DNA from: Mantamonas sphyraenae STR306
Lineage: Eukaryota; Protista; CRuMs
DNA: 64,000 nt
Assembly (NCBI GenBank): GCA_026936335.1
Contig: JAPMXV010000029.1
Coordinates: 62,001-126,000 of the forward strand
Direction of reading: 5' to 3'
In this document: positions 11,362 through 42,176 of the stretch, one piece after another
Layout of the letters: each line of letters begins with the position of its first letter
Numbering within the stretch: the first letter of the stretch is position 1
Notes under the pieces: generated by a model
The model's database searches: none
What the model was told of the DNA's origin: nothing
What the model saw: the letters and a program-made list of their open reading frames with translations, nothing else
Position numbers and translations under genes: made by a program

Positions 11362-14300
11362 ATGTCGATTCTGAAGTGTCAGCACCATAGCTGCAACAAC
11401 GAGACAGTGCTCATGGTGTGCTGGGTAACGTCAGCCGAACCTCACGTGTCGCTGGTGTGTCCGACCTGTGTGGCCGACAACGAGTCGATTTCCCTGTACA
11501 CACCACGAACAAAACTACCTGCAAATCTGGGCGAGCCCGAAGGTGACATGCAAGGGTACGCCAACGTCAACGGTGTCAACCCCGCGAAGGTGGCATGCTG
11601 GGTGTCGTCCTATACCACCGCCGTGCGCGCCTCTCCACCTCTGCGAACGTCCATGTGCAAGTACCTTATCGCATGGCTGGAGGCAACGGCAGGCGGGAAC
11701 GACCCGACCCAGTTGGGGCCTGAGCCTGGGGAGCAAGGTAAGCTCAAACCGCACTCAATCCCGCTGACAGGAGAGTGGAGATTGCTCACCCGCCCTCTTT
11801 GCGCCGGCACACACAGACCCCAGCGTCGTCAACACGGCCCTTCTGCGGCAGACCTGGTGCATGGCCATGTTCTGTGACGACGACATGTATGCCGTGGCCT
11901 GCAACGATCTCTTCCTTGCCGCTACAGTGCTGGCAGGCGGCGACGACCTGTGGGGTGACTCGGCAGATTTCCATCACCGCCTCGAGGTCGCATTCGACTC
12001 TGACTTCCCCATCCAGATGTTGCATGGTGGTACCCCCCCGCCAGCGGACGCCGCAGGGGTTGCAAAGCTCGCGATGCAAGAAGCACTCCAGCAGGAGCAG
12101 CAAGTGCCCTTCGGGGTGCTCTGTTTCCAAGGGGAGCACTACACGGCATGGCTTCCACTGGCGGAAGGGAAATTCCGTGTGTACAATGACCTTGCGCAGC
12201 AGCTGACTGACGAGGAGTGGCCCGCGCCTGAGCGTGCGCCCACGGGTTTCAAGCTGGTCTTTCTCAAGTCTCAACCGGAAGAGGATTGGACGTTGCCGTC
12301 TGCCATGGGCACCATGGATCTCGACAACAAATCAAGCGTGTTCCGCAAGCCCATGGCCATCAAGGGCCCGCGAGTTGTGATGCAGAGCAAGGAGAGCTCC
12401 ACCTCAGCTGCTGGAAGGCGTTTGTACGCGCACGCTGCACGGGCTCGAGGGACAACGCCAGCGCCTCAAGGACGGCCACCTTCGACCCGGGTGCAGGTTG
12501 CTGGGTCAACCGCATCTGTGCGTGGGCTCCGTTTCAACCGTGTGCCTGCAAAGCAGACATCAGCGGGCCAGTTTGCATCGCTGCCCACTGCCGGCAAGAC
12601 GCCCGTGACCGCCAAGTGTCTGGACGTGTTGAACGACAACTGGCAACCCCCACCTTTGGCTGACTCTGCTGTCAACGAGGGCGTGGAGGGTGGTGTGCAG
12701 TGTGGCGTCGGTGGGTCGGGGGGAAACTGCCTCGCCACAGTGCACGTTGGCCTCAGCAGCCTCGCCGCTCGCTACTTGCACCTCTCCGACCATACCATCA
12801 CGCATCCCGCCCCGTTTCCGAACATGCTGCCCGTCTCTGGCGTACAAAACCCGTACCAGCACCCACAACCACCCATCATCTGGGGCAATGTCAACACCCA
12901 TCCCCAGCAGCAGCACCACGCGGATGCTCATCAGGGCCACCCATACTACACCCACCCTCCTCCGCCTCCTCCTCAGCCGCGACAAACCGCCCAGGTGCAC
13001 TTTGCTCAGCCTCCGTCGCACCCTCCACCTGCTCAACGCACCACAAACCACAACCGCGTCCCGAAACGCATCAGCCCTGCCTTTGTCGGCATCACACGGA
13101 CCACATCCACCACCACATCGTCGTCCTCCTCCCACCAGGCCACACGGCAGACTGGAGACAGCGACGACGACGCAGAACAGGACACACACATACTTGACAA
13201 CGTTGACGTGGAGGACCTGATGTTCCTGAACTTTGGCCACATTGAGCCACTGTCCATCTCTAGCAACCCAGAGTGGATGACCACCTCATGGATGGAGGCG
13301 TACGAGGTAGACGGCGAGGCAACCCAGCAGCACGTGGACGACGAGGTGGAAACTGGGGGTTCATTCAGGTTTGCAGACACCGGTGATGCCATGGATGAGG
13401 AGTACATGCCGCAAGACGACAGCGACGACGACACAGACGACATGGAGCAGGAGGGCGCGGACGAGTGGCAGCCGAGACGCACGAGACGAGGCCGCGCACA
13501 ACGACGCAGAGGCCACATCAACCGTCGTACTGGCAGTGGCACCGAGACAGGAACGTCGAGCACACGGGCAAGGAGGGCCAAGAACGGAGACACCGGCGCA
13601 CGGAAGAAAACAGGCGTGAACAAGGAGAACAAGTTGCCAGATGGTGTTGTGCGCAAAGGGTGGACAGCGAGAATCAGTGACGAGCGCAGCCACAGCAACA
13701 AGAAGGAGCACACGGGACTGCTGAAGCACATGCGTACCTTGGCCAACGAACATCCCATCGACGACATCCCCGACCTCATGACCCTGCAGGCGCGTGTTGT
13801 GGTCTGCCATGGCACCCTGAACACGCTGGTCCGACAGATTCAGCTCGCTCTGGGCAACATTCCTCTCTCCAAGGGCGACATGGCCTTGTGCCTCACGCTC
13901 CTCGGCCGTGACGTGGATCAACATGCGTGCAGTGCTGCCATCCGTGACTCTGGTCTGGCCACGGGTGTGACAAAGGCTGGGTTGAAGGTGTGCTGGCTGG
14001 AGGAGCCACACGACTACGGCGACCCCAGCTACGCCCTCCTCCACCTGCTCATGACAGAGATGGACACTCTCGGCCACAGGCCCCATCCCACCACCTGGAA
14101 GGAGCACAAGCAGACCCGGCTGTCGCTGCAGGAAGCACGACGCCCTGCTGACAACGACAGCGACCCACACTGGACACAGTGCGACTACGACCACCACCTC
14201 ACCACCGCCGAGGTGGAAGAGTGGCATCCAGAGTCTGTGCGCAGTGGCTGGGCAAGGCACAATCCCAACGACGAGCGTGGCAGCTGCACGACGCGGGAGT

Positions 14301-17300
14301 TCCAGACGCTGCTGGCACACATGAAGGCACGCGCAGCCAAGCACCCTCGCCATCAGCACGCACACGAGCTCCGTGCACTTCGTGAGCTGATCAACAACGG
14401 CAGTGTGAACTCCCTGGTGCGACACATCGTCCTGGCGCTGGGCAACGTTGGCGTGCCGCCTGTCGACCTGGCCTTCTTTGTCCGCCTCCTCAGGCCACAC
14501 CTCACCTACCAGCAGGTGGTTGGTGCCATCAACCACACCCTCAGCCGCGGGGTCACCTCCCTCTCCCTCAAGATCGCCTGGCTCGACAACCCCAAACGCG
14601 ACGACGCCACACTGCACACCCTCGTCCACACCCTCATCGACCGCATCACACCCCACATCACCGCACGCCCCACCACTGTCGACGCCGTCAACGCCCTCGA
14701 CATCCCTGAACTTGTTCTGCCCGAAGCAACAGAGGAGGAGATGATGGCCGCTGAGGATGGACTGCCAGATGGCGTTGTGCGCAGTGGCTGGAAGAGGTGG
14801 CGCAGGAACGACCGCAGCCACAGCAACAAGAAGGAGCACACGGCACTGCTGAAGCACATGCACACTCTGGCCAACGAGCATCCTCTCGACAGTATCCCAG
14901 ACCTCATGAACCTGCAGGCGCGTGTTGTGGTCTGCCATGGCACCACGTTGACGCTGATCCGACAGATTCAGCTCGCTCTGGGCAACATTCCTCTCTCCAA
15001 GGGTGACATGGCCTTCTGTCTCACGCTTCTCGGCCGTGACATGGATCAAAATGCGTGCAGCATTGCCATCAACTACGCTGGTCTGGCCATGGGTGTGACA
15101 GAGGCTGGGTTGAAGGTGTGCTGGCTGGAGGAGCCACACGACCACGGCGACCCCAACTATGCCCTCCTCAACCTGCTCATGACAGAGATGGACACGCTTG
15201 GCGACAGGCCCCATCCCACCACCAGGGAGGAGCACAAGCAGACCCGGCTGTGGCTGCAGGAAGCACGACGCCCTGCTGACAACGACGGCGACCCACACTG
15301 GACACAATGCGACTATGACCACCACCTGAACACCACCGAGGTGGAAGAGTGGCATCCTGAGTCTGTGCGCAGTGGCTGGGCAGCGCAGAATTCCAGCGAC
15401 GAGCGTGGCAGCTGCACGGGGCGGGAGTTCCAGACGCTGCTGGCACACATGAAGGATCGCGCAGCTAAGCATCCTCGCCATCAGTACACACATGAGAACC
15501 AGGCACTGCGTGAGCTGATCATCCACGGCGACCTGGAGTCCCTGCTGCGACACATCATCCTGGCACTGGGCAACGTTGGCGTGCCGCCTGTCGACCTGGC
15601 CTTCTTTGTCCGCCTCCTCAGACCACACCTCACCTACCAGCAGGTGCAACAGGCCATCAACCACACCCTCACCCGCGGCGTCACCTCCCTCTCCCTCAAG
15701 ATCGCCTGGCTCGACAACCCCAAACCCAGCGACGCCACACTGCACACCCTCCTCCACACCCTCATCGACCACATCACACCCCACATCACCACCCGCCCAA
15801 CCACCACCGCACTCGTCAACGCCCTCGACATCCCCGAGCTTGTTCTGCCCGAGCCCACCGAGGAGGAGTTGATGGCCATGGAGGGACTGCCAGACGGTGT
15901 TGTGCGCAGTGGCTGGAAGAGGTGGCGCAGGCGCAGCCACAGCAACAAGAAGGAGCACACGGCACTGCTGAAGCACATGCACATTCTGGCCAACCAGCAT
16001 CCTACCGACGACACCCCAGACATCATGAACCTGTACGCCCGCGTTGTGATCTGCAATGCATCCATGTCCGGGCTGGTCCGACAGATTCAGCTTGCTCTGG
16101 GCAGCATTCCCCTCTCCCAGGGCGACATGGCCCTCTTCCTCACCCTTCTCGGCCGTGACATGGATCAACAGGCGTGCAGTGCTGCCATCATCGGCGCTGG
16201 TCTGGCCACGGGTGTGACAGAGGCTGGGTTGAAGGTGTGCTGGCTGGAGGAGCCACGCGACCACGGCGACCCCGACTATGCCCTCCTCCACCTGCTCATC
16301 ACAGAGATGCGCACTCTCGGCGACAGGGCCCATCCCACCACCTGGAAGGAGCACAAGCAGACCCGGCTGTGGCTGCAGGAAGCACGACGCCCTGCTGACA
16401 ACGACAGCGACCCACACTGGACACACTGCGACGATGTCTCGCCGCCCACCACCGACGTGCGCTTGCGACGCAATAGCAAGTCGGCACTTCTCAGAATTGC
16501 GCGCAAGATGGCGGAAACGAATACTCCCGTCCAACCCGAAGTCTGGCTGGTCGACTGTGGGTACTATACGTTCCTCACGCTCAGGCGTATGCATTGGGGT
16601 ACCCTTGCAGAGACCCCCAAAACGCGCGTGGAAAACGCCATGAAATCATTGCAGGCTGAGCTCGACCACAGGCTTGAGCCCTGCCCACGCGAGGCCATCT
16701 TCTTTACCGAACATCCCGGGACGGACGATGACCTGCTGCTGCTGTGCGGCGGCGCGGGATACAAGAGCCGATCTTGGTTCGTGGACCTCATGAGACGTAT
16801 GGCGAATGGCATTCGCAAGAATGGCCCTCGCGATCTCCTTAAACAAAGCAAGGCGATTCGGTACAGGCTTTGTGCCGCTGCCTTGGTCAATTCCGGGAGG
16901 AGTGTCATGGTGCCTGAGGACCAATCGCGTATGGCAGAGGCAGACACATTGCTGGTCGACTGGATCGCCACGGAGGTGTCCGACGATGTCGCCTGCTTGG
17001 GTGTCGTGGCTGAGGACAGCGACGATCTGACATGCGTGGCGAGTGCCGGCCTCTCGCGGCCGTTGGTTTATCGCAGCGCGAGAAACCCAGAGGAAAGCCT
17101 TTCGCTGACGACAGAGGACCAGCAACGGCTCCTCCATCTCTCGTTGCTGGCACTGACGGATGTGCCTCATCCGGATGACTGGAGTGAAGAGCAAGAGGTG
17201 CTACGTTTTATGCGGGCACATCTGTACGAAAGCAGCGCATTGGATGTCCAGCTCCCAGACACCGCCTACGTTGCCGAGAACCGCCGCAATCGTCACGCCT

Positions 17301-20300
17301 TCGACAACAACAAGAGTCGCAAGAGAGACCGTCCAGTCCCCTTGACCAAAAAGCGCGCCAAGCAGGAGGTGGACGCGGTGGAGATATTGGTTGAGGCCTA
17401 CAACCGGGCAAGCGACAAAAACATGCCTGGCTGCACTGAAGACGACTCTGGACGAGTACGAGGAGAATCATGCTGACCTGGACGTGTTGAAGAGATTTCT
17501 GAATCGGAAAAGCCAAGGATGGAATCAATCAGTCCCCGAGGGCGAGCTGGTAGGCTTGGAGGGGGTGACGTTGCTTCTGGGTGTACGAACTGCCCTGAAG
17601 ATTCTGGGCGGGGTCCGGCCAAAGAAGGTTGCGAACTTGGCAGCGACGATCTGCAATGAGGCCTTTGACCGTGGCGAGTATGGCCCTCTGGAACTGCATC
17701 CCTATTTTCTGATGAACAAGGTGTTGGAGCAAGAGAAGAGGAAGCGCAAGAACGAACAGGAGGAGGATGAGGAGGGAGGAGAGGTGGAGAAGAGGCAACG
17801 TGTGGAGGAGGTGTGTCCCCTTTCATCTTCCCAGAGCTACGGGTACATGGTCCCTCCCATGGCTGCCCAGCCGTTTCCGAACACGCTGCCCGTCTCTGGC
17901 GTACAAAACCCGTACCAGCACCCACAACCACCCATCATCTGGGCCCCTGTCAACACCCATCCCCAGCAACACCACGGATACGCTCATCAGGGCCACCCAT
18001 ACTACGCCTACCCTCCTCCGCCTCCTCCTCAGCCGCGACAAACCGCCCAGGTGCACTTTGCTCAGCCTCCGTCGCACCCTCCGCCTGCTCAACCCACCAC
18101 GAACCACAACCGCGTCCCCAAACGCATCAGCCCTGCGTTTGTCGGCATCACACGGACCACATCCACCACCACATCGTCGTCGTCTTCCCACCAGGACATC
18201 CGGCAGACTGGAGACAGCGACGACGACGACGCATACCAGGACACACACACACATGACACTGGTGACGTGGAGGACCTGATGTTCCTGAACTTTGGCCACC
18301 TTGAACCACTGTCCATCTCCAGCAACCCAGAGTGGATGAGCAGCTCATGGATGGAGGCGTACGAAGAAGACGGCGAGGCATACGACCCAATCTTGCTGCA
18401 CATGGACGACGAGATGGAAACTCAGGGCGCACTCAGCTTTGCAGACACTGGTGATGCCATGGATGAGGAGTACATGCCGCAAGACGACAGCGACGACGAC
18501 ACAGACGACATGGAGCAGGAGGGCGCGGACGAATGGCAGCCGAGAGGCAACGGTAGAGGGCACGCTCGCCGTCGTACTGGTCCACAGAAGATGAAAGGCA
18601 GCGGACAGCGCAGGCGCAGGGTCACGGCTGGCAGTGGCACAGAGACAGGAACGTCGAGCAAACGGGGAAGGAGGGCCAAGAACGGAGACACCGGCGCACG
18701 GAAGAAAGCAGGCATGAACAAGAAGATCAAGTTGCCAGATGGTGTTGTGCGCAGTGGCTGGACAATGGGACACAGTGACGAGCGCAGCCACAGCAACAAG
18801 AAGGAGCACACGGCACTGCTGAAGCACATGCACACCCTGGCCAATGAGCATCCCATCGACAACATCCCAGACCTCATGACACTGCAAGCGCGTGTTGTGG
18901 TCTGCCATGGCACTACGACCACGCTTGTCCGACAGATTCAGCTTGCTCTGGGCAACATTCCCCTCTCCCAGGGCGACATGGCCCTCTGCCTCACCCTTCT
19001 CGGCCGTGACATGGATCAACAGGCGTGCAGCGTTTCCATCATCAACGCTGGTCTGGCCACAGGTGTGACAGAGGCTGGGTTGAAGGTGTGCTGGCTGGAG
19101 GAGCCACACGACCACGGCGACCCCAACTATGCCCTCCTCAACCTGCTCATGACAGAGATGGACACTCTCGGCAACAGGCCCCATCCCAGCACCTGGAAGG
19201 AGCACGAGCAGACCCAGCTGTTGCTGCAGAAAGCACGACGCCCTGCTGACAACGACAGCGACCCACACTGGACACAGTGCGACTACGACCACCACCTCAC
19301 CACCGCCGAGGTGGAAGAGTGGCACCCTGAGTCTGTACGCAGTGGCTGGAGCAGGGGAACTCCCAGCGACGAGCGTGCCAGCTGCACGGCGCAGGAGTAC
19401 CAGTCGCTGCTGGCACACATGAAGGCACGCGAAGCCAATTATCCTCGCCATCAGCACGCACACGAGCTCCGTGCACTTCGTGAGCTGATCAACAACGGCG
19501 ACCTGAATTCCCTGCTGCGACACATCGTCCTGGCGCTGGGCAACGTTGGCGTGCCGCCTGTCGACCTGATCTTCTTTGTCCGCCTCATCAGGCCACGCCT
19601 CACCTGCAAACAGGTGCAAAAGGCCATCACCACCATCCTCACCCGCGGCGTCACCTCCCTCTCCCTCAGGATCGCCTGGCTCGACAACCCCCGACCCAGC
19701 GACGCCACACTGCACACCCTCCTCCACACCCTCATCGACCGCATCGCACCCCACATCACCACCCGCCCCACCACCACCGCACTCGTCAACACCCTCGACA
19801 TCACCGCGCTTGTTCTGCCCGAGCCAACGAAGGAGGAGGAAGTGGTGGCCGTTGAGGATGGACTGCCAGATGGCGTTGTGGGCAGTGGCTGGACCAACTG
19901 GCGCAAGAGCGAGCGCATGCACAGCAACAAGAAGGAGCACACGGCACTGCTGAACCATATGCACAGCCTGGCCAACGAGCATGCCATGGACGACATCCCA
20001 GACCTCATGACCCTGCAGGCGCGTGTTATGGTCTGCCATGGCACCCTGACCACGCTCGTCCGACAGATTCAGCTCGTTCTAGGCAACATTCCCCTCTCCC
20101 AGGGCGACATGGCCCTCTGTCTCACCCTTCTCGGCCGTGACGTGGATCAAAGCGCGTGCAGACTCGCCATCCAGAGCGCTGGTCTGGCCATGGGTGTGAC
20201 AAAGGCTGGGTTGAAGGTGTGCTGGCTGGAGGAGCCACACGACCACGGCGACCCCAACTACGCCCTCCTCCACCTGCTTGTGACAGAGATGGACACTTTC

Positions 20301-23300
20301 GGCAACAGGCCCCATCCCACCACCTGGAAGGAGCACAAGCAGACCCGGCTGCGGCTGCAGGAAGCACGACGCCCTGCTGACAACGACAGCGACCCACACT
20401 GGACACAATATGACTACGACCACCACCTTGCCACCGCCGAGGTGGAAGAGTGGCATCCTGAGTCAGTGCGCAGTGGCTGGAGCAAGACCGGAGACGAGCG
20501 TGGCAGCTGCACGGCGCGGGAGTTCCAGACGCTGCTGGCACACATGAAGGCACGCGCAGCCAATTATCCTCGCCATCAGCACACACACGAGCACCAGGCA
20601 CTGCGTGTGCTGATCAACAACGGCAGCAAGCTGTCTCTGGTGCGACACATCATCCTGGCGCTGGGCAACGTTGGCGTGCCGCCTGTCGACCTGGCCTTCT
20701 TTGTCCGCCTCCTCAGGCCACACCTCACCTACCAGCAAGTTCAACTTGCCATCAGCGCCACCCTCAGCCGCGGTGTCACCTCCCTCTCCCTCAAGATCGC
20801 CTGGCTCGACAACCCCCCACCCAGCGACGCCACACTGCACACCCTCCTCCACACCCTCATCGACCGCATCACACCCCACATCACCACCCGCCCCACCACC
20901 ACCGACGCCGTGAACACCCTCGACATCCCCAAGCTTGTTCTGCCCGAGCCCACAGAGGAGGAGACGATGGTCGTGGAGGGTGGACTGCCAGATGGCGTTG
21001 GGCGCAAGAGCGAGCGCAGCCACCAAGGCACACGGCAGACTGGAGACAGCGACGACGACGACGCAGACGAGGACACACAAACACATGACACTGGTGACGT
21101 GGAAGACCTGATGTTCCTGAACTTTGGTCACCGTGAACCACGGTCAATCTCCAGCGTCTCATCATGGATGGAGGCGTACGGAGAAGACGGTGTGGCAAAC
21201 GACACAACTCAGCAGCACGTGGACGACGTGTTGGACCTCCAGGACCCACTCAGCTTTGCAGACACTGGTGATGCCATGGATGAGGAGTACATGCCGCAAG
21301 ACGACAGCGACGACGACACAGACGACATGGAGCAGGAGGACACGGACGAATGGCAGCCGAGGCGCACAAGTAGAGGCCACACGCGACGACGCAGAGCCCA
21401 CAACAGCCGTCGCAAGGGTCCACACACGATGAAAGGCAGCGGACAGCGCAGGCGCAGGGTCACGGCTGGCAGTGGCACAGAGACAGGAACGTCCAGCACA
21501 CGGGCAAGAAGGGCCAAGAATGGAGACAACGGTGCACGGAAGAAAGCAGGCGTGGACAAGACGAATAAGTTGCCAGATGGTGTTGTGCGCAAAGGGTGGA
21601 CAACAGGACACAGTGACGAGCGCAGCTACAGCAACAAGAAGGAGCACACGGCACTGCTGAACCACATGCACACCCTGGCCAACGAGCATCCCATCGACGA
21701 CATCCCAGACCTCATGACCCTGCAAGCGCGTGTTATGGTCTGCCATGGCACCCTGACCACGCTTGTCCGACAGATTCGGCTCGCTCTGGGCAACGTGCCG
21801 CTCTCCCAGGGCGACATGGCCCTCTGCCTCACCCTTCTCGGTCGTGATGTCGATCAACAGACATGCAACAGTGCCATCCACGACGCTGGTCTGGCCATGG
21901 GTGTGACAAAGGCTGGGCTGAAGGTGTGCTGGCTGGAGGATCCACTCGACCACGGCAACCCCGACTACGCCCTCCTCCACCTGCTCATGACCGAGATGGA
22001 CACTCTCGGCAACAGGCCCCATCCCACCACCTGGAAGGAGCACGAGCAGACCCGGCTGTCGCTGCAGAAAGCACGACGCCCTGCTGACAACAACAGCGAC
22101 CCACACTGGACACAGTGCGACTACGACCACCACCTCACCACCGCCGAGGTGGAAGAGTGGCACCCTGAGTCTGTACGCAGTGGCTGGAGCAGGGGAACTC
22201 CCAGCGACGAGCGTGCCAGCTGCACGGCGCGGGAGTTCCAGACGTTGCTGGCACACATGAAGGCACGCGCAGCCAAGCACCCTCGCCATCAGCACACACA
22301 CGAGCTCCGTGCACTTCGTGAGCTGATCAACAACGGCGACCTGAATTCCCTGCTGCGACACATCGTCCTGGCGCTGGGCAACGTTGGCGTGCCGCCTGTC
22401 GATCTGGCCTTCTTTGTCCGCCTCATCAGGCCTCACCTCACCTACAAGAAGGTTCAAGTTGCCATCACCGCCACCCTCACCCGCGGCGTCACCTCCCTCT
22501 CCCTCAAGATCGCCTGGCTCGACAACCCCAAACCCAGCGACGCCACACTGCACACCCTCCTCCACACCCTCATCGACCGCATCACACCCCACATCACCAC
22601 CCGACCCACCACCACCGACGCCGTGAACACCCTCGACATCCCCGAGCTTGTTCTGCCCGAGCCAACGAAGGAGGAGGAAGTGGTGGCCGTTGAGGATGGA
22701 CTGGCAGATGGCGTTGTGCGCAGTGGCTGGACTCGCTGGCGTAGCGACGAGCGCAGCCACAGCAACAAGAAGGAGCACACTGCCCTGCTGAAGCACATGC
22801 ACACCCTGGCCAACGAGCATGCCATGGACGACATCCCAGACCTCATGACCCTGCAGGCGCGTGTTATGGTCTGCCATGGCACCCTGACCACGCTCGTCCG
22901 ACAGATTCAGCTCGTTCTAGGCAACATTCCCCTCTCCCAGGGTGACATGGCCCTCTGTCTCACCCTTCTCGGCCGCAACATGGATCAACATGCGTGCAGC
23001 AAAGTCATCATCAAGGCTGGTCTGGCCACAGGTGTGACCAAGGCTGGGTTGAAGGTGTGCTGGCTGGAGGAACCACACGACCACGGCGACCCCAACTACG
23101 CCCTCCTCCACCTGCTCATCACAGAGATGAGCACTCTCGGCGACAGGGCCCATCCCACCACCTGGAAGGAGCACGAGCAGACCCAGCTGTTGCTACAGGA
23201 AGCACGACGCCCTGCTGACAACGACAGTGACCCACACTGGACACAATGCGACTACGACCACCACCTTGCCACCGCCGAGGTGGAACAGTGGCATCCCGAG

Positions 23301-32567: not shown

Positions 32568-35500
32568 TCATTCGAGGCGCTGGCGTTTGGAGGAGGAGGA
32601 GGAGGAGGAGGAGGAGGAGGAAGGGTTTTTGCGCTTGGGGAGGGTGAACGAGGGGATAGGGTAGGCGTTGACGAGTGCGATGGTGGTGGGTCGGGTGGTG
32701 ATGTGGGGTGTGATGCGGTCGATGAGGGTGTGGAGGAGGGTGTGCAGTGTGGCGTCGCTGGGTTTGGGGTTGTCGAGCCAGGCGATCTTGAGGGAGAGGG
32801 AGGTGACGCCGCGGGTGAGGGTAGTGCTGATGGCAGGTTGCACCTGCTGATAGGTGGTGTGTGGTCTGAGGAGGCGGACAAAGAAGGCCAGGTCGACAGG
32901 CGGCACGCCAACGTTGCCCAGCGCCAGGATGATGTGTCGCACCAGAGACAGCAGGTCGCCGTGGATGATCAACTCACGCAGTGCCTGGTGCTCGTGCGCG
33001 TACTGATGGCGAGGGTACTTGGCTGAGCGTGCCTTCATGTATGCCAGCAGCGTCTGGAACTCCCGCGCCGTGCAGCTGCCACGCTCGTCGCTTGTTCTCT
33101 GCACTGCCCAGCCACTGCGCACAGACTCGGGATGCCACTTGTCCACCTCGGTGATGGTGAGGTGGTGGTCATAGTCGCATTGAATCCAGTGCGGGTCGCT
33201 GTCGCTATCAGCAGGGCGTCGTGCTTTCTGCAGCCACAGCTGGGTCTGCTCGTGCTCCTTCCAGGTGGTGGGATGGGGTCTGTCGCCGAGAGTGTCCATC
33301 TCTGTCATGAGCAGGTGGAGGAGGGCGTAGTTGGGGTCGCCGTGGTCGTGTGGCTCCTCCAGCCAGCACACCTTCAACTCAGCCTTGGTCACACCCATGG
33401 CCAGGCCAGCGTGGAGGATGGCATGGCTGCACGCCGTTTGATCCATCTCACGGCCGTGAAGGGTGAGGCAGAGTGCCATGTCGCCCTGGGAGAGGGGAAT
33501 GTTGCCCAGAGCGAGCTGAATCTGTCGGACAAGCGTCAGCAGCGTGCCATGACAGACCACAACACGTGCCTGCAGGGTCATGAGGTCGGAGATGTCGTCG
33601 AGAGGATGCTCGTTGGCCAGGGTGTGCATGTGCTTCAGCAGTGCCGTGTGCTCCTCCTTGTTGCTGTGGCTGCGCCTGCGCCACCTCTTCCAGCCACAGC
33701 GCACAACGCCATCTGGCAGTCCATCCTCCACGGCCATCTTCTCCTCCTCTGTGGGCTCGGGCAGAACTAGCTTGGGGATGTCGAGGGTGTTGACGGCGTC
33801 AGTGGTGGTGGGGCGGGTGGTGATGTGGGGTGTGATGCGGTCGATGAGGGTGTGGAGGAGGGTGTGCAGTGTGGCGTCGTTGCGTTTGGGGTTGTCGAGC
33901 CAGGCGATCTTGAGGGAGAGGGAGGTGACACCGTGGCTGAGGGTGATGCCGATGGCACCTTGCACCTGCTGGTAGGTGAGGTTTGGCCTGAGGAGGCGGA
34001 CAAAGAAGGCCAGGTCGACAGGCGGCACGCCAACGTTGCCCAGCGCCAGGATGACGTGTCGCACAAGGGACTGCTGGTTTCCATTGTTGATCAGCTCACG
34101 CAGTGCATGGAGCTCGTGTGTGTGCTGATGGCGAGGGTGCTTGGCTGCACGTGTCTTCATGTGTGCCAGCAGCGTCTGGAACTCTCGCGCCGTGCAGCTG
34201 CCACGCTCGTCGCTGGGAGTACCCTTGGTCCAGCCACTGCGCACAGACTCTGGATGCCACTTGTCCACCTTGATGGTGGTATCGAGATGGTGGTCGTAGT
34301 CACATTGTGTCCAGTGTGGGTCGCTGTCGTTGTCAGCAGGGCGTCGTGCTTTCTGCAGCACCAGTTGGGTCTGCTCGTGCTCCTTCCAGGTGGTGGGGTG
34401 GGGCCTGTCGCCGAGAGTGTCCATCTCGCTCATGAGGAGGTGGAGGAGGGCGTAGTTGGGGTCGCCGTAGTCGTGTGGCTCCTCCAGCCAGCACACCTTC
34501 AACCCAGCCTTTGTCACACCCATGGCCAGACCAGCGGCGTGGATGGCACTGCTGCACGCCATTTGATCCATGCCACGGCCGAGAAGGGTGAGGCACAAGG
34601 CCATGTCGCCCTGGGAGAGAGGAATGTTGCCCAAAGCGAGCTGAATCTGTCGGACCAGCGTGCGCAGGGTGCCATGGCAGACCACAACACGCGCCTGCAG
34701 GGTCATGAGATCGGTGATGTCGTCGATGGGATGCTCATTGGCCAGGGTGTGCATGTGCTTCAGCAGTGCCGTGTGCTCCTTCTTGTTGCTGTGGCTGCGC
34801 TCGTCACTGGGCCCCATTGTCCAGCCACTGCGCACAACACCATCTGGCAACTTGATCTTCTTGTCCACGCCTGCTTTCTTCCGTGCGCCGGTGTCTCCGT
34901 TCATGGCACTCCTTGCCCGTGTGCTCGACGTTCCTGTCTCGGTGCCACTGCCAGCCGTGACCCTGCGCCTGCGCTGTCCGTTGCCTTTCATCTTCTGTGG
35001 ACCAGTACGACGGCGAGCGTGCCCTCTACCGTTGCCTCTCGGCTGCCACTCGTCCGCGCCCTCCTGCTCCATGTCGTCGCTGTCGTCGTCGCTGTCATCT
35101 TCCGGCATGTACTCCTCATCCATGGCATCACCAGCGTCTGCAAACCTGAATGAACCCCCAGTTTCCACCTCGTCGTCCACGGGCTGCTGGGGTGCGTCGT
35201 TTGCCTCGCCGTCTACCTCGTACGCCTCCATCCATGAGCTGCTCATCCACTCTGAGTTACTGGAGGGTGACCGTGGTTCAATGTGGCCAAAGTTCAGTAC
35301 CATCAGGTCCTCCACGTCACCAGTGTCATGTGTGTGCGTATCCTGGTCTGCGTCGTCGTCGTCGTCGCTGTCTCCAGTCTGCCGTGTGGCCTGGTGGGAG
35401 GAGGAGGACGATGTGGTGGTGGTGGATGTGGTCCGTGTGATGCCGACAAACGCAGGGCTGATGCGTTTGGGGACGCGGTTGTGGTTCGTGGTGGGTTGAG

Positions 35501-38500
35501 CAGGCGGAGGGTGCGACGGAGGCTGAGCGAAGCGCATCTGGGCGGTTTGTCGCGGCTGAGGAGGAGGCGGAGGAGGATAGGCGTAGTATGGGTGGCCCTG
35601 ATGAGCATAAGCGTGGTGTTGCTGCTGGGGATAGGTGTTGACAGGGACCCAGATGATGGGTGGTTGTGGGTGCTGGTACGGGTTTTGTACGCCAGAGACG
35701 GGCGGCATGTTCGGAAACGGCTGGGCAGCCATGGGAGGGACCATGTACGCATCGCTGTGGGAAGATGAAAGGGGACACACCTCCTCTTCCACACGTTGCC
35801 TCTTCTCCACCTCATCCTCCTCCTGTTCGTTCTTGCGCTTCCTCTTCTCTTGCTCCACCACCTTGTTCATCAGAAAGTACGGATGCAGCTCCAGAGGGCC
35901 ATACTCGCCACGGCCGAAGGCCTCATTGCAGATCGTCACTGCCAAGTTCGCAACCTTCTTTGCCCGGACCTCCCCCAGAATCCCCAGGGCAGTGTGTACA
36001 CCCAGAAGCAACGTCACCCCAGTCAAGTCTTGCAGCTCGCCCTCGGGGACTGATTGATTCCATCCTTGGCTGTTCTGATTCAGAAATGTCTTCAACCCGT
36101 CCAGGTCAGCATGATTCTTCTCGTACTCGTCCAGAGTCGTCTTCAGTGCAGCCAGGCATGTTTTGTCGCATGCCCGGTTGTAGGCCTTAACCAATTCCAC
36201 CACCGCGTTCACCTCCTGCTTGGCGCGCTCTCTGGTCAAGGGGACTGGACGGTCTCTCTTGTCACTGTTGTTGCCGAAAGCGTGACGATTGCGGTGGTTC
36301 TCAGCAACGTAGGCGGTGTCTGGGAGCTGGACATCCAATGCGCTGCTTTCGTACAGATGTGCCCGCATAAAACGTAGCACCTCTTGCTCTTCACTCCAGT
36401 CATCCGGATGAGGCACATCCGTCAGTGCCAGCAACGAGAGATGGAGGAGCCGTTGCTGGTCCTCTGTCGTCAGCGAAATGCTTTCCTCTGGGTTCTTCGC
36501 GCTGCGATAAACCAACGGCAGCGAGAGGCCGGCACTCGCCACGCATGTAAGATCGTCGCTGTCCTCCGCCACGACACCCAAGCACGCGTAATCGGACCCC
36601 TCCGTGGCGATCCAGTCGACCAGCAATGTGTCTGCCTCTGCCATACGCGATTGGTCCTCAGGCACCATGACACTCCTCCCAGAATTGACCAAGGCAGCAG
36701 CACAAAGCCTGTACCGAATCGCCTTGCTTTGTTGAAGGAGATCGCGCGTCCGGGACGCCGTTCTCAGCGTCTCGACGAACCACGTTCGGCTCTTGTATCC
36801 CGCGCCGCCGCACAGTAGCAGCAGGTCATCGTCCGTCCCGGGATGTTCGGTAAAGAAAATGGCCTCGCGTGGGCAGGGCTCAAGGCTGCGTTCGAGCTCA
36901 GCCTGCAATGATTTCATGGCGTTTTCCACGCGCGTTTCGCTGTCCTCTGCAAGGGTACCCCAATGCATACGCCTGAGCGTGAGGAACGTGTAGAGCCCGC
37001 AGTCGACCAGCCAGACTTCGGGTTGGACCGGAGTATTCGTTTCGGCCATCTTGCGCGCAATTTTGAGAAGTGCAGACTTGCTATTGCGTCGCAAGCGCAC
37101 GTCGGTGGTGGGCGGCGGGACATCGTCGCAGTGTGTCCAGTGTGGGTCGCTGTCGTTGTCAGCAGGGCGTCGTGCTTCCTGCAGCCACAGCTGGGTCTGC
37201 TTGTGCTCCTTCCAGGTGGTGGGATGGGGCCTGTTGCCAAGGGTGTCCATCTCTGCCATGAGCAGGTGGAGAAGGGCGTAGTTGGGGTCGCCGTGGTCGT
37301 GTGGCTCCTCCAGCCAGCCCACCTTCAACCTAGCCTTTGTCACACCCACGGCCAGACCAGCGCCGGTGATGGCATTGCTGCATGCACGTGGATCCATGTC
37401 ACGGCCGAGAAGCGTGAGAAAGAAGGCCATGTCGCCCTGGGAGAGGGGAATGTTGCCCAGAGCGAGCTGGATCTGTCGGACCAGCCCGGACATGGATGCA
37501 TTGCAGATCACAACACGGGCATACAGGTTCATGATGTCGCGGGTGACGTCGGTAGGACGCTGGTTGGCCAAAGTGTGCATGTGGTTCAGCAGTGTCGTGT
37601 GTTCCTTCTTGTTGCTGTGGCTGCGCCTGCGCCACCCCTTCCAGCCACTGCGCACAACGCCGTCTGGCAGTCCTTCCATGGCCATCAACTCCTCCTCTGT
37701 GGGCTCGGGCAGAACAAGCGCGGTGATGTCGAGGGCGTTGACGGCAGCGACAGTGGTGGGGCGGGTGGTGATGTGGGGTGTGATGCGGTCGATGAGGGTG
37801 TGGAGGAGGGTGTGCAGTGTGGCGTCGCTGGGTTGGAGGCTGTCGAGCCAGGCGATCTTGAGGGAGAGGGAGGTGACCCCGCGGGCGAGGGTGGCGCTGA
37901 TGGAAGAAATGACCTCGTTGTAAGTGAGGCGTGGCCTGATGAGGCGGACAAAGAAGGCCAGGTCGACAGGCGGCACGCCCACGTTGCCCAGTGCCAGGAT
38001 GATGTGTCGCACCAGGGACAGCAGGTCGCCGTGGATGATCAGCTCACGCAGTGCCTGGTTCTCATGTGTGTACTGATGGCGAGGATGCTTAGCTGCGCGA
38101 TCCTTCAGGTGTGCCAGCAGCGTCTGGAACTCCCGCACCGTGCAGCTGCCACGCTCGTCGCTGGAATTCTGCGCTGCCCAGCCACTGCGCACAGACGCAG
38201 GATGCCACTTTCCCCCCTCGGTGGTATCGAGATGGTGGTCGTAGTCACATTGTGTCCAGTGTGGGTCGCTGTCGTTGTCAGCAGGGCGGCGTGCTTCCTG
38301 CAGCCACAGTTGGGTCTGCTCGTGCTCCTCCCTGGTGGTGGGGTGGGTCCTGTCGCCGAGAGTGTCCATCTCTGTCATGAGGAGGTGGAGGAGGGCGTAG
38401 TTGGGGTCGCCGTGGTCGTGTGGCTCCTCCAGCCAGCACACCTTCAACCCAGCCTTGGTCACACCCATGGCCAGGCCAGCGTGGAGGATGGCATGGCTGC

Positions 38501-41500
38501 ACGCCTGTTGATCCATGTCACGGCCGAGAAGGGTGAGGCAGAGGGCCATGTCACCCTGGGAGAGGGGAATGTTGCCCAGAGCGAGCTGAATCTGTCGGAC
38601 AAGCGTCAACAGGGTGCCATGGCAGACCACAACCCGCGCCTGCAGGGTCATCAGGTCGGGGATGTCGTCGATGGGATGCTCGTTGGCCAGGACGTGCATG
38701 TGGTTCAGTAGTGCCGTGTGCTCCTTCTTGTTGCTGTGGCTGCGCTCATTGCTACGCCAGGTTGTCCAGCCACTGCGCACGACGCCATCTGGCAGTCCAC
38801 CCACCACTTCCATCTCCTCCTCCTCGGTGGGCTCGGGCAGAACTAGCTCGGGGATGTCGAGGGTGTTGACGGCGTCGATGGTGGTGGGGCGGGTATTGAT
38901 GTGGGGTATGATGCGGTCGATGAGGGTGTGGAGGAGGGTGTGCAGTGTGGCGTCGCTGGGTTGGAGGCTGTCGAGCCAGGCGATCTTGAGGGAGAGGGAA
39001 GTGACGCCGCGGGTGAGGGTGGTGTTGACGGCAGATTGCACCTGCTGATAGGTGAGTTGTGGCCTGAGGAGGCGGACAAAGAAGGCCAGGTCGACAGGCG
39101 GCACGCCAACGTTGCCCAGCGCCAGGATGATGTGTCGCACCAGGGACTTCAGGTCGCCGTGGATGATCAGCTCACGCAGTGCATGGTTCTCGTGTGCATG
39201 CTGATGGCGAGGGTGCTTGGCTGCGCGATCCTTCATGTGTGCCAGCAGCGTCTGGAACTCCCGCGTCGTACAGCTGCCTCGCTCGTCTGCGGTGTTGCTC
39301 CAGCCACTGCGCACAGACACAGGATGCCACTTGTCCACCTTGGTGGTGGTGGCAAGGTGGTGGTCGTAGTCGCATTGCGTCCAATGGGGGTCGCTGTCGT
39401 TGTCAGCAGGGCGTCGTGCTTTCTGCAGCCACAGCTGGGTCTCCTCGTGCTCCTTCCAGGTGGTGGGATGGGGCCTGTCGCCGAGCATGTCCATCTCTGT
39501 CATGAGCAGGTGGAGGAGGGCGTAGTTGGGGTCGCCGTGGTCGTGTGGCTCCTCCAGCCAGCACACCTTCAACCCAGCCTTTGTCACACCCATGGCCAGA
39601 CCAGCGTGGGGGATGGCATTGCTGCATGCGTATTGATCCACGTCACGGCCGAGAAGGGTGAGGCAGAAGGCCATGTCGCCCTGGGAGAGGTGAATGTTGC
39701 CCAGAGCGAGCTGAATCTGTCGGACAAGCGTCAACAGAGTGCCATGGCAGACCACAACACGCGCCTGCAGGGTCATGAGGTCGGGGATGTCGTCGATGGG
39801 ATGCTCGTTGGCCAGGGCGTGCATGTGGTTCAGCAGTGCCGTGTGCTCCTTCTTGTTGCTGCGGCTGCGCTCGTCACTGTGTCCCATTGTCCAGCCACTG
39901 CGCACGACGCCACCTGGCACTCCATCCTCCACGGCCAACTTCTCCTCCTTCGTTGGCTCGGGCAGAACTAGCTCGGGGATGTCGAGGGTGTTCACGGCGT
40001 CGAAGGTGGTGGGGCGGGTGGTGATGTGGGGTGTGATGCGGTCGATGAGGGTGTGGAGGAGGGTGTGCAGTGTGGCGTCGCTGGGTTTGGGGTTGTCGAG
40101 CCAGGCGATCTTGAGGGAGAGGGAGGTGACGCCGCGGGTGAGGGTGTCCTTGATGGCAGTTTGCACCTGTTTGCAGGTGAGGTGTGGCCTGAGGAGGCGG
40201 ACAAAGAAGACCAGGTCGACAGGCGGCACGCCAACGTTGCCCAGTGCCAGGGTGATGTGTCGCACCAGGGACTTCAGGCTGCCGTTGTTGATCAGCTCAC
40301 GGAGTGCATCGTGCTCGTGTGTGTGCTGATGGCGTGGGTACTTGGCTGCACGTGTCTTCATGTGTGCCAGCAGTGTCTGGAATTCACGCGCCGTGCAGCT
40401 GGCACGCTCGTCGCTGGGACCTTTGGTCCAGCCACTGCACGCTGACTCAGGATGCCACTTGTCCACCTTGGTGGTGGTGGCAAGGTGGTGGTCGTAGTCG
40501 CATTGTGTCCAGTGTGGGTCGCCGTCGTTGTCAGCAGGGCGTCGTGCTTCCTGCAGCAACAGCTGGGTCTGCTTGTGCTCCTCCCTGGTGGTGGGATGGG
40601 GCCTGTCGCCGAGAGTGTCCATCTCTGTCATGAGCAGGTGGAGGAGGGCGTAGTTGGGGTCGCCGTGGTCGTGTGGCTCCTCCAGCCAACACACCTTCAA
40701 CCCAGCGTTTGTCACTCCCATGGCCAGACCAGCGCATCGGATGGCATTGCTGCACGCATGTTGATCCATATCGCGGCCGAGAACGGTGAGGCAGAAGGCC
40801 ATCTCACCCTTGGAGAGGGGAATGTTGCCCAGAGCGAGCTGAATCTGTCGGACCAGCGTCAACAGGGTGCCATGGCAGACCACAACACGCGCCTGCAGGG
40901 TCATGAGGTCGGGGATGTCGTCGATGGGATGCTCGTTGGCCAGAGTGTGCATGTGCTTCAGCAGCAGAGCCGTGTGCTCCTGGTTGTTGCTGCGGGTGCG
41001 CTCATCCCTGCGTCCCGCTCTCCACCCTTTGCGCACAACACCATCTGGCAACTTGTTCTTCTTGTCATCGCCTGCGTTCTTCCGTGCGCCGTTGTCTCCG
41101 TTCATGGCCATCCTAGCCAGTGTGCTCGACGTTCCTGTCTCTGTGCCACTGCCAGCCGTGACCCTGCCCCTGCGCTGTCCGCTGCCTTTTTGTGAACCAG
41201 TACGATGGCTGGTGTGGCCTCCACTTGTGCGACTCGGCTGCCACTCGTCCGCGCCCTCCTGCTCCATGTCGTCTGTGTCGTCGTCGCTGTCGTCTTGCGG
41301 CAAGTACTCCTCATCCATGGCATCACCAGTGTCTGCAAACCTGAATGAACCCCCCGTTTCCACCTCGTCGTCCACGTGCTGCTGGGTTGCGTCTTCTGCC
41401 CCACCGTCTTCTTCGTACGCCTCCATCCATGAGCTGCTCATCCACTCTGGGTTGCTGGAGATTGACAGTGGCTCAAGGTGGCCAAAGTTCAGTACCATCA

Positions 41501-42176
41501 GGTCCTCCACGTCGCCGGTGTCATGTGTGTGTGTGTCCTGGTATGCGTCGTCGTCGTCGTCGCTGTCTCCAGTCTGCTGGATGTCCTGGTGGGAAGACGA
41601 CGACGATGTGGTGGTGGATGTGGTCCGTGTGATGCCGACAAACGCAGGGCTGATGCGTTTGGGGACGCGGTTGTGGTTCGTGGTGGGTTGAGCAGGCGGA
41701 GGCTGCAACGGAGGCTGAGCGAAGCGCATCTGGGCGGTTTGTCGCGGCTGAGGAGGAGGCGGAGGAGGATAGGCGTAGTATGGGTGGCCCTGATGAGCAT
41801 ATGCGTGGTGTTGCTTCTGGGGATAGGTGTTGACAGGGACCCAGATGATGGGTGGTTGTGGGTGCTGGTACGGGTTTTGTACGCCAGAGGCGGGCAGCAT
41901 GTTCGGAAACGGCTGGGCAGCCATGGGAGGGACCATGTACCCGTAGCTGTGGGGAGAAGGGGAGGGTGGCAAGGCGGGGTGGGAACGGCGAGACGAAGGC
42001 GGAATGGGCGCTGTCAGAGCATAGCCAGGGGTGAATGGAGGCTGGAACGAGCAGAGAGGGAAAAACGAAGGAGATTGGCTGACCGGGAAACTGGCAACGG
42101 GGAGGGCAGTGACAGGGGAGAGGGGATCGGAGAAGAGCGGAGAAGGCAGCAAAGGTGGTGATGGGGAAGTGGACAT
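32568..42176 (-). CDS. Giant modular protein copy 2 (3202-aa ORF; likely start 41936 MVPPMAAQPF): P/Q-acidic-basic module, ABABABA, FEN1/XPG-like nuclease, NLS, second module, ABAB, NLS
   Basis: Uninterrupted ORF with 6 A and 5 B repeats. Nuclease motifs VWLVDCG, AIFFTE, AEADTLL, AEDSDDL, LALTDV at about 36410-37020. Ends KRKNPSSSSSSSSSSSKRQRLE*. Confidence 0.92.
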   Translation of the reverse strand: MSTSPSPPLLPSPLFSDPLSPVTALPVASFPVSQSPSFFPLCSFQPPFTPGYALTAPIPPSSRRSHPALPPSPSPHSYGYMVPPMAAQPFPNMLPASGVQNPYQHPQPPIIWVPVNTYPQKQHHAYAHQGHPYYAYPPPPPPQPRQTAQMRFAQPPLQPPPAQPTTNHNRVPKRISPAFVGITRTTSTTTSSSSSHQDIQQTGDSDDDDDAYQDTHTHDTGDVEDLMVLNFGHLEPLSISSNPEWMSSSWMEAYEEDGGAEDATQQHVDDEVETGGSFRFADTGDAMDEEYLPQDDSDDDTDDMEQEGADEWQPSRTSGGHTSHRTGSQKGSGQRRGRVTAGSGTETGTSSTLARMAMNGDNGARKNAGDDKKNKLPDGVVRKGWRAGRRDERTRSNNQEHTALLLKHMHTLANEHPIDDIPDLMTLQARVVVCHGTLLTLVRQIQLALGNIPLSKGEMAFCLTVLGRDMDQHACSNAIRCAGLAMGVTNAGLKVCWLEEPHDHGDPNYALLHLLMTEMDTLGDRPHPTTREEHKQTQLLLQEARRPADNDGDPHWTQCDYDHHLATTTKVDKWHPESACSGWTKGPSDERASCTAREFQTLLAHMKTRAAKYPRHQHTHEHDALRELINNGSLKSLVRHITLALGNVGVPPVDLVFFVRLLRPHLTCKQVQTAIKDTLTRGVTSLSLKIAWLDNPKPSDATLHTLLHTLIDRITPHITTRPTTFDAVNTLDIPELVLPEPTKEEKLAVEDGVPGGVVRSGWTMGHSDERSRSNKKEHTALLNHMHALANEHPIDDIPDLMTLQARVVVCHGTLLTLVRQIQLALGNIHLSQGDMAFCLTLLGRDVDQYACSNAIPHAGLAMGVTKAGLKVCWLEEPHDHGDPNYALLHLLMTEMDMLGDRPHPTTWKEHEETQLWLQKARRPADNDSDPHWTQCDYDHHLATTTKVDKWHPVSVRSGWSNTADERGSCTTREFQTLLAHMKDRAAKHPRHQHAHENHALRELIIHGDLKSLVRHIILALGNVGVPPVDLAFFVRLLRPQLTYQQVQSAVNTTLTRGVTSLSLKIAWLDSLQPSDATLHTLLHTLIDRIIPHINTRPTTIDAVNTLDIPELVLPEPTEEEEMEVVGGLPDGVVRSGWTTWRSNERSHSNKKEHTALLNHMHVLANEHPIDDIPDLMTLQARVVVCHGTLLTLVRQIQLALGNIPLSQGDMALCLTLLGRDMDQQACSHAILHAGLAMGVTKAGLKVCWLEEPHDHGDPNYALLHLLMTEMDTLGDRTHPTTREEHEQTQLWLQEARRPADNDSDPHWTQCDYDHHLDTTEGGKWHPASVRSGWAAQNSSDERGSCTVREFQTLLAHLKDRAAKHPRHQYTHENQALRELIIHGDLLSLVRHIILALGNVGVPPVDLAFFVRLIRPRLTYNEVISSISATLARGVTSLSLKIAWLDSLQPSDATLHTLLHTLIDRITPHITTRPTTVAAVNALDITALVLPEPTEEELMAMEGLPDGVVRSGWKGWRRRSHSNKKEHTTLLNHMHTLANQRPTDVTRDIMNLYARVVICNASMSGLVRQIQLALGNIPLSQGDMAFFLTLLGRDMDPRACSNAITGAGLAVGVTKARLKVGWLEEPHDHGDPNYALLHLLMAEMDTLGNRPHPTTWKEHKQTQLWLQEARRPADNDSDPHWTHCDDVPPPTTDVRLRRNSKSALLKIARKMAETNTPVQPEVWLVDCGLYTFLTLRRMHWGTLAEDSETRVENAMKSLQAELERSLEPCPREAIFFTEHPGTDDDLLLLCGGAGYKSRTWFVETLRTASRTRDLLQQSKAIRYRLCAAALVNSGRSVMVPEDQSRMAEADTLLVDWIATEGSDYACLGVVAEDSDDLTCVASAGLSLPLVYRSAKNPEESISLTTEDQQRLLHLSLLALTDVPHPDDWSEEQEVLRFMRAHLYESSALDVQLPDTAYVAENHRNRHAFGNNSDKRDRPVPLTRERAKQEVNAVVELVKAYNRACDKTCLAALKTTLDEYEKNHADLDGLKTFLNQNSQGWNQSVPEGELQDLTGVTLLLGVHTALGILGEVRAKKVANLAVTICNEAFGRGEYGPLELHPYFLMNKVVEQEKRKRKNEQEEDEVEKRQRVEEEVCPLSSSHSDAYMVPPMAAQPFPNMPPVSGVQNPYQHPQPPIIWVPVNTYPQQQHHAYAHQGHPYYAYPPPPPPQPRQTAQMRFAQPPSHPPPAQPTTNHNRVPKRISPAFVGITRTTSTTTTSSSSSHQATRQTGDSDDDDDADQDTHTHDTGDVEDLMVLNFGHIEPRSPSSNSEWMSSSWMEAYEVDGEANDAPQQPVDDEVETGGSFRFADAGDAMDEEYMPEDDSDDDSDDMEQEGADEWQPRGNGRGHARRRTGPQKMKGNGQRRRRVTAGSGTETGTSSTRARSAMNGDTGARKKAGVDKKIKLPDGVVRSGWTMGPSDERSHSNKKEHTALLKHMHTLANEHPIDDITDLMTLQARVVVCHGTLRTLVRQIQLALGNIPLSQGDMALCLTLLGRGMDQMACSSAIHAAGLAMGVTKAGLKVCWLEEPHDYGDPNYALLHLLMSEMDTLGDRPHPTTWKEHEQTQLVLQKARRPADNDSDPHWTQCDYDHHLDTTIKVDKWHPESVRSGWTKGTPSDERGSCTAREFQTLLAHMKTRAAKHPRHQHTHELHALRELINNGNQQSLVRHVILALGNVGVPPVDLAFFVRLLRPNLTYQQVQGAIGITLSHGVTSLSLKIAWLDNPKRNDATLHTLLHTLIDRITPHITTRPTTTDAVNTLDIPKLVLPEPTEEEKMAVEDGLPDGVVRCGWKRWRRRSHSNKEEHTALLKHMHTLANEHPLDDISDLMTLQARVVVCHGTLLTLVRQIQLALGNIPLSQGDMALCLTLHGREMDQTACSHAILHAGLAMGVTKAELKVCWLEEPHDHGDPNYALLHLLMTEMDTLGDRPHPTTWKEHEQTQLWLQKARRPADSDSDPHWIQCDYDHHLTITEVDKWHPESVRSGWAVQRTSDERGSCTAREFQTLLAYMKARSAKYPRHQYAHEHQALRELIIHGDLLSLVRHIILALGNVGVPPVDLAFFVRLLRPHTTYQQVQPAISTTLTRGVTSLSLKIAWLDNPKPSDATLHTLLHTLIDRITPHITTRPTTIALVNAYPIPSFTLPKRKNPSSSSSSSSSSSKRQRLE

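Follow-up and report, generated by a model that had tools for sequence, protein, structure and literature searches.

Giant chimeric genes of Mantamonas sphyraenae may join putative winged-helix reader modules to a candidate FEN-type nuclease domain

To our knowledge, animal zinc-finger arrays and bacterial TAL effectors are almost the only known examples of large, diversifying sets of modular DNA readers. TAL effectors and TALENs share with the Mantamonas sphyraenae genes described here focal hypervariable positions within an array, an NLS, an acidic region, and a joined nuclease. However, they have 33- to 35-aa repeats, a two-residue one-base code, and a superhelix, none of which was found in the Mantamonas units, and the TALEN nuclease is FokI, whereas the nuclease candidate of Mantamonas, here called domain X, is of predicted FEN type. 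TALEN fusions are engineered. In FokI and the I-TevI-type homing endonucleases, HTH or winged-helix recognition modules are tethered to a separate nuclease, and in type I HsdS shuffling the exchange of recognition domains changes the target. These systems differ from the present one in being prokaryotic or phage, in their PD-(D/E)XK or GIY-YIG catalysis, and in having two to three modules, compared with up to 13 in the Mantamonas genes. The C2H2 zinc-finger arrays (KRAB-ZNF and fish FiNZ-ZNF; PMC10547256) have in common with the Mantamonas genes a large lineage-specific family of tandem readers, a constant scaffold with a positively selected recognition helix, a constant accessory leader, and a transposon-rich genome. 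The pattern reported for the base-contacting residues of zinc-finger arrays against transposons is also like that of the variable sites in the Mantamonas units (PMC10547256). In contrast to zinc fingers, the Mantamonas module is an unrelated domain of ~190 aa, a predicted winged helix that alternates between two types (A and B), and the genes sit behind telomeres, some with a candidate nuclease, in a reader role that is predicted.

The MARF1/Limkain-b1 proteins, with their PIN-OST-HTH architecture, likewise combine a nuclease of the PIN superfamily with winged-helix domains, and such proteins have been linked to retrotransposon surveillance (PMC5499597). Nevertheless, the MARF1 nuclease is NYN-type, whereas the acid pattern of X is FEN-type, with no NYN match in Pfam; the OST-HTH domains are ~70 aa, RNA-binding, and not hypervariable, with no match to the Mantamonas units; and no 180-gene reservoir of nuclease-free paralogues accompanies them. 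The FEN-like PIN nucleases (FEN1, EXO1, XPG, GEN1, Asteroid, Pox G5, and VHS; PMC5499597) resemble X in the order and spacing of seven acids, the strand-then-Asp pattern, and the ESM Atlas neighborhood, but X lacks an HMM or structure match to them and is embedded among reader modules. The TLO genes of Candida albicans (PMC4214616, PMC5908203) are a telomere-adjacent expansion of nuclear regulators with diverging paralogues, but they encode 10-15 Med2 subunits, with no repeat modules, recognition helices, or nuclease. In architecture, the MARF1/PIN-OST-HTH proteins are nearest to the Mantamonas genes, whose working resembles a zinc-finger or TALE repertoire; they are members of neither.

Mantamonas sphyraenae is a diploid CRuMs flagellate, a marine, deep-branching protist, which was sequenced in three DNA runs and one poly-A RNA run (PMC10492846). 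The source assembly has 25,061,354 bases in 78 contigs (the longest of 751,365 bases), with TTAGGG telomere tracts at most contig ends. The window analyzed here is the 64,000-nucleotide stretch at positions 62001-126000 of contig C29, and positions below are those of the window unless a contig is named. It also contains a fusion of a multicopper oxidase with an ABCG-type half transporter (25346-29777, minus strand), 116-bp tandem units of 93-98% identity (45448-46291), and an RBR-type E3 ligase gene with CCCH-like fingers (61088-62650). An earlier note on this DNA had described two giant genes of shared layout as a candidate natural TALEN-like system. The alternation of A and B units around a single X, the leaders, and the NLS clusters are indeed shared; the numbers of units and the leaders differ. 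The likeness to TALENs does not hold, since the units are globular domains of 180-196 aa, not one-base repeats of 33-35 aa, and a nuclease of the predicted FEN type would not be FokI-like.

The A unit comprises 196 aa and the B unit 180 aa. They alternate, as had been proposed, and are homologous to each other at ~28% identity. A model of the A unit, built on an alignment of A, B, and diverged units from a gene on contig C69, reached a pLDDT of 83 and a pTM of 0.81. As seen in this model, helices at residues 62-72, 80-89, and 96-105 are followed by strands at 108-113 and 117-122 (pLDDT ~90), the predicted order being that of a winged helix, a three-helix core and then a beta-hairpin wing. For residues ~60-125, the top matches were winged helices in three fold libraries (Foldseek, VIA, and Atlas): Foldseek gave MarR types at E 0.03 and weaker, and VIA gave Fur, F-93, and Fox, with a best Z of 5.5 and an rmsd of 1.7 over 60 residues. 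The Z-scores are middling, yet the matches agree on one fold in one region. Modeling of an AB unit had been proposed earlier, and for the A unit the outcome points to a winged helix. Winged-helix folds can bind RNA or protein too.

The variability of the units was evaluated on 68 A and 66 B units. About ten sites per unit are variable, in three patches: a loop (residues 11-16), the start of helix 1 (63), and the recognition helix (97, 100/101, and 104/105), which is the element that enters the DNA major groove. The hypervariable positions noticed earlier are real and common to A and B, whose per-site variability is correlated (Spearman 0.37, p=1.6e-4), and six-site signatures were distinct in 64 of the 68 and 63 of the 66 units. 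The dN/dS at the variable sites was 1.4 (p=0.018) and 1.6 (p=0.004), compared with 0.40 and 0.47 for the scaffold, values to be read knowing that the sites were picked after inspection of the data and that recombination can push up such counts when they are made on one tree. Residues at these sites are polar or basic in 64-71%, hydrophobic in 15-24%, and acidic in 3-4% of cases. Four-gamete violations in 50-72% of site pairs indicate pervasive recombination, which, together with one telomeric-type unit in the C69 gene, bears out the earlier suggestion of repeat shuffling. With a modeled winged helix and a positively selected, mostly polar or basic recognition helix, the units look like diversifying nucleic-acid-reading modules, as the earlier note had supposed.

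An AB query matched at least 109 places in the genome, almost all of them ~1.7 kb from a contig end, and the terminal 20-mer of the family genes occurred 176 times genome-wide (control, 0). The family therefore has at least 176 genes (~180), with 1-3 of them directly behind nearly every TTAGGG telomere; among the first 100 sites listed, the only two clear internal ones lie in this window. The genome-wide check that had been proposed thus returned a large family, but one that is almost entirely telomeric and without X. A nuclease as the family core, as first imagined, does not fit: X was found in 3 of ~180 genes (genes 1 and 2 and one on C69), and the probable RNA run yielded no contig across it. 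Twenty left chromosome ends were analyzed in sequence and the right ends by their coordinates. A gene of the form N-(AB)2-3-tail, N being the leader block, was present at 19 of the 20 left ends, often in tandem; it starts a few hundred bases in from the (CCCTAA)n tract and points toward the chromosome interior. An NLS-like motif closes every family gene, and in most nuclease-free copies the frames have stayed open under purifying selection. Judged by its sequence, the typical product, with its acidic leader, NLS, and four modules, resembles a nuclear factor. Variable LRR and ankyrin genes are found in the same subtelomeres, and on contig C3 a telomerase reverse transcriptase-like ORF (L004:6798-9686, minus strand), the sole RVT_1 match in the genome, adjoins two family genes on their inner side, at ~7 kb from the telomere.

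Beyond M. sphyraenae, no relatives of X or the units turned up in word searches, in viral and metagenome contigs, or in Pfam, NCBIfam, PHROGs, and PDB sequences; AB had none in the Atlas, BFVD folds yielded none, and a profile search of 1.84 billion proteins gave no true relative of X or the units. Three hits of that search were rejected as unrelated repeat proteins in which weak stretches had been summed, as were the Pfam rows DUF3349 and DUF5552, which fell below the cut-off. In paper searches, no description of the winged-helix array family or its X-bearing members was found. The family therefore appears to be an orphan, specific to Mantamonas.

Domain X occupies 16457-17732 in gene 1 (plus strand) and 35850-37100 in gene 2 (minus strand), as a candidate FEN-like PIN core with a helical extension. 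The motifs LVD, FFTE, AEAD, AEDSDD, and LALTD, reported earlier for both copies, occur in that order in these and in the third copy on C69. Their seven acids (D33, E85, E155/D157, D180/D182, and D228) are conserved in all three copies, at the spacing of FEN1, in agreement with the earlier assignment as FEN-type carboxylates; we take their FEN1 counterparts to be D34, D86, E158/E160, D179/D181, and D233. After S2, a Glu takes the place of the Asp. The codons lie at about 16553, 16709, 16937, 17015, and 17159 in gene 1 and start at 37004, 36848, 36638, 36632, 36563, 36557, and 36419 in gene 2. The FEN group is defined by acids after S1, S2, and S4, before H5, and two before H4, plus an Asp of the H2TH/H3TH (PMC5499597), and this set of acids was found in all three copies. 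After the core, a helix leads to Thr-Asp in the position expected for it (in C69, Gly-Tyr-Thr-Asp); the Gly-rich turn of the H2TH/H3TH is not evident. A loose FEN pattern arose in 0.3-0.4% of 20,000 shuffles.

Profile and structure searches with X came out negative or uninformative and did not confirm a PIN alpha/beta/alpha fold with its helical arch. It had no HMM match to XPG_N, XPG_I, or 5_3_exonuc, nor any match in Pfam or PDB; HHalign was at chance level against nine 5' exonucleases, all of them phage or bacterial; and the model, built from 5 alignment rows, had a pLDDT of 36.6 and no Foldseek or VIA match. The ESM Atlas neighbors of X were Asteroid, FAM120, XPG_I, Pox G5, and VHS (0.87-0.89), nine of ten in one clan, a placement that we treat as a lead only. 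Five ordinary XPG_I loci exist elsewhere in the genome, separate from X. The C69 copy is 44% identical to those of the giant genes (dN 0.59, with a dN/dS ratio of ~0.14 at saturated dS), and by this comparison X was long conserved. Between genes 1 and 2, dN/dS was 0.6 and 1.0 at ~10% synonymous divergence. Overall, X is very probably of FEN-type identity.

Gene 2 (minus strand) has the layout N-(AB)3A-X-N-(AB)2 and is one intact ORF of 3202 aa (42176-32568). Its leader block N (41052-42176) contains the first family-type ATG at residue 81 of the ORF, which is open from 42176. The array A-B-A-B-A-B-A (37101-41051) precedes X, which is followed by an NLS-like cluster with a second leader N (34851-35849) and by the array A-B-A-B with a poly-Ser tail, a terminal NLS-like motif, and the stop (32568-34850). 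A direct repeat of 181 nt, comprising gene tail and spacer, is present at 32441-32621 and, at 96% identity, at 42497-42677, the second copy being continued by a decayed B-unit remnant (42497-42940, minus strand). The repeat is explained by the position of gene 2 behind the decayed tail of another copy, and 42497-42940 would be what is left of the end of an upstream tandem copy since lost, an arrangement like that of the telomeric tandem arrays. The third X-bearing gene, on C69, is a frame of 2165 codons with eight mostly diverged units, then X and the end of the protein; one unit is 80% identical to the telomeric type and the others 20-55%. A long tandem-repeat array (C69:270465-274456) lies directly upstream of this gene, and two paralogous ORFs of ~800-900 codons lie downstream of that array.

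Gene 1 (plus strand) has the layout USP-like-N-(AB)2A-X-N-(AB)2-partial N-(AB)2, with five units before X, eight after it, an additional partial leader, and the stop at 23864. It begins within a Tc1/IS630-type transposon, whose 5' part (8988-12816, plus strand) carries the gene 1 graft and is found again, at 95-97%, in six other internal loci, with two further ones at 90%, the copies being compared by coordinates. The element is placed in Tc1/IS630 by a DDE transposase ORF of 293 aa (9165-10046, plus strand; Pfam DDE_3, E=3.7e-27) inside a dispersed multicopy unit. Its left end has no second match in the window as a terminal inverted repeat, allowing up to 3 mismatches, and no right end that would enclose gene 1 as cargo was found there. 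A dispersed repeat of at least 1.57 kb (7400-8968), with copies on C29, C75, and C76 at 92-96%, adjoins this left end. Exon 1 of gene 1 (11362-11737) encodes a Cys cluster and a Cys-box-like motif of a USP-like protease, the transposon cargo, and has 11 related loci; the region has no Pfam match, and the USP label is based on motifs. A predicted GT..AG intron of 79 nt (11738-11816), its phase checked by coordinates, links this frame to the remaining USP-like domain, which by its sequence has a His-box-like motif and a linker (11817-12811). Database searches with the spliced USP-like model, and with gene 1 across its frameshift, were made piece by piece. The stretch 11362-12816, formerly counted as part of the family, thus belongs to the transposon.

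In the other copies of the element, the USP-like cargo frame runs for 1750-2060 codons; in gene 1, it changes to the family leader across a 5-base overlap. Since none of the listed run contigs bridges this junction, it rests on the long-read assembly. PF07282 had no match inside the other copies. About 35 TnpB/Fanzor zinc-ribbon matches were found genome-wide, in giant frames of 1500-2090 codons. The stretch 11817-12811 contains an antisense B-unit remnant of 56 bp (12667-12722), within a decayed minus-strand piece (12667-12790) that is 84-87% identical over the 56 bp. It falls inside the stretch common to other Tc1/IS630 copies, hinting at an earlier exchange between the transposon and the reader family. 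Downstream follow a leader block N of telomeric-family type, P/Q-rich, acidic, and basic (12812-13633), the array A-B-A-B-A of predicted winged-helix modules (13634-16456), X, and an NLS-like cluster with a second leader N, where the fused telomere-type gene would begin (17733-18731). The array A-B-A-B (18732-20984), a partial third leader block, acidic and basic (20985-21569), and a last A-B-A-B with poly-Ser tail, terminal NLS-like KRQRLE, and stop (21570-23864) complete the gene, and the DNA behind it (23865-24705) is common to the subtelomeres of C17, C30, and C69. Gene 1 had been taken for a single gene; it is a family array, but in the assembly it is split by one extra A at 17417, a 1-base frameshift past the catalytic core. 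This base is absent from every run contig at the site in both Illumina DNA runs (depth 21.7/21.7 and 20.2/20.2), and the gene 2 substitution at 17411 is not listed for those contigs. On these grounds, the break is probably an assembly error or a single allele.

Apart from X, telomeric-family DNA covers genes 1 and 2 at 84-89% identity, so that each consists of an array-X gene and a telomere-type gene fused in frame. The X-adjacent units of the two genes are mutual closest relatives, and most of the distal ones are closest, by small margins, to various telomeric copies. Both giant genes are recombinants, gene 1 being additionally grafted onto the protease ORF of the Tc1/IS630 element. The arrays on both sides of X, which the earlier note had read as a design, are a product of in-frame fusion: the C69 protein ends after X, and the second halves of the giant genes are fused telomere-type genes. 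We regard the chimeric junctions as established, together with the architecture, copy number, and telomeric position of the family, its predicted unit fold, and the selection pattern. The left end of C29 (C29:1-10000) carries no family gene, and subtelomere-type DNA, with an LRR gene, spacers, and both giant genes, lies 65-105 kb inside this contig (window 3175-7094, 23865-24705, and 32410-42940). A terminal inversion or an end fusion could be the cause of this arrangement.

We favor, at a probability of roughly 45%, a repertoire of winged-helix reader modules of which rare members tether a 5' nuclease, and not a FokI-like cutter. The A and B units would be the modules of a repertoire, particular to Mantamonas and at least 176 genes strong, that diversifies its recognition helices and swaps modules by recombination. 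Genes 1 and 2 and the older C69 gene would be rare members with a FEN1/EXO1-type 5' nuclease, and the two giant genes may thus be natural retargetable nucleases. The modules may bind particular sequences, of DNA more likely than of RNA, and the likely target would be invading or mobile DNA. FEN-type enzymes are 5' structure-specific nucleases that act on 5' flaps, nicks, ends, or RNA; trimming or resection by a tethered enzyme would suit such habits better than double-strand cleavage in the manner of FokI. The modules would hold the nuclease at the site, where 5' ends, flaps, or nicks might be trimmed, with no double-strand cut by it alone. We infer nucleic-acid binding, nuclease activity, the target, and the continued use of genes 1 and 2. 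The ~35 giant TnpB/Fanzor-type ORFs are a plausible adversary and donor.

The closest rival, which we consider rather improbable but well ahead of the others, is that genes 1 and 2 are silent by-products of recombination, that nuclease-free telomeric readers, transcription-factor-like, do the work, and that X is used at most by the C69 gene. It draws on expression. Three of the runs (X1 to X3) have contigs across all of the gene 1 and gene 2 regions, X included, and the fourth (X4) is deep on leaders and units, but lacks contigs on X and has hardly any on the transposon part. This leaves X4 as the probable poly-A RNA run, in which case the nuclease-free family would be transcribed and genes 1 and 2 would have no detectable transcripts in culture, so that the X-bearing members may be quiet. 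X is also weakly constrained between the two genes, the rest of each matches telomeric copies at 84-89%, gene 1 is chimeric with a transposon and possibly a broken allele, and gene 2 stands behind a decayed tandem remnant. On the other hand, the ORF of gene 2 is intact over 3202 aa, and the seven acids have been retained in both copies through the ~10% synonymous divergence. Moreover, the single culture condition leaves room for induced expression, the run type was assigned by elimination, and rare transcripts get lost from run contigs.

A bolder form of the reader-nuclease idea, which we hold to be unlikely, is that the internal FEN-type genes take modules by gene conversion from the ~180 telomeric genes and are so reprogrammed, cassette by cassette, against foreign or mobile DNA. 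The user would be the cell or, for gene 1, where the array-nuclease stands in place of the usual cargo, a transposon, and targeting would be programmed by protein through a new modular code.

Two further readings turn on what the variable surface touches, and each seems to us quite unlikely. One is that the modules read viral or transposon RNA, which X degrades as herpes VHS does. RNA decay by tandem winged helices with a PIN-like nuclease has precedents (PMC5499597), the Atlas neighbors of X include VHS and FAM120, and Roquin ROQ is weakly present in the fold list of the units. Nevertheless, every gene has an NLS-like end in addition to an acidic leader, none of 26 units matched OST-HTH/LOTUS in Pfam, and the variation falls on the recognition helix, a DNA major-groove element. 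The other is that the surface binds proteins, such as viral ones, the products being intracellular sensors with X as the effector in a few. The hydrophobic share at the variable sites and the net acidity of the A units (-6, with a neutral winged helix) would suit this, as would the variable LRR and ankyrin genes in the same subtelomeres; however, acidic residues are nearly absent at these sites, the winged helix of B is basic (+4.5), and the products carry nuclear signals.

Least probable of all is a selfish telomere cassette, in which arrays bind the ends and a few X-bearing "master" copies resect them so that the cassette is copied between subtelomeres: the fixed position and orientation right after the telomere in 19 of 20 left ends, the frequent tandem copies, and the few X-bearing beside many nuclease-free copies recall autonomous and nonautonomous elements, but inverted ends, poly-A, and target duplications are missing, 3' boundaries are ragged, the sole RVT_1 match is telomerase, a constant telomeric target needs no diversified recognition helices, and most nuclease-free copies have open frames under purifying selection. 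Ragged 3' ends with no poly-A or fixed 3' boundary also depart from telomere-targeted retroelements. A retroelement was rejected, with no reverse transcriptase, as was an endogenous virus, with no viral matches and host metabolic genes as neighbors.

What may be new, then, are the three X-bearing members of the winged-helix repertoire, their chimeric origin, the transposon graft, and the signs of their being quiet. If the X copies are dead, they still record the building of giant chimeric genes by telomeric recombination and a transposon. If the favored reading is true, such readers arose independently once more, with winged helices as a third scaffold and in a lineage near the root of eukaryotes, and their hundreds of natural variants open the recognition code to direct tests. 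The X-bearing members would then be nature's equivalent of engineered reader-nuclease fusions and might be a response to the load of Fanzor-bearing transposons in this genome.
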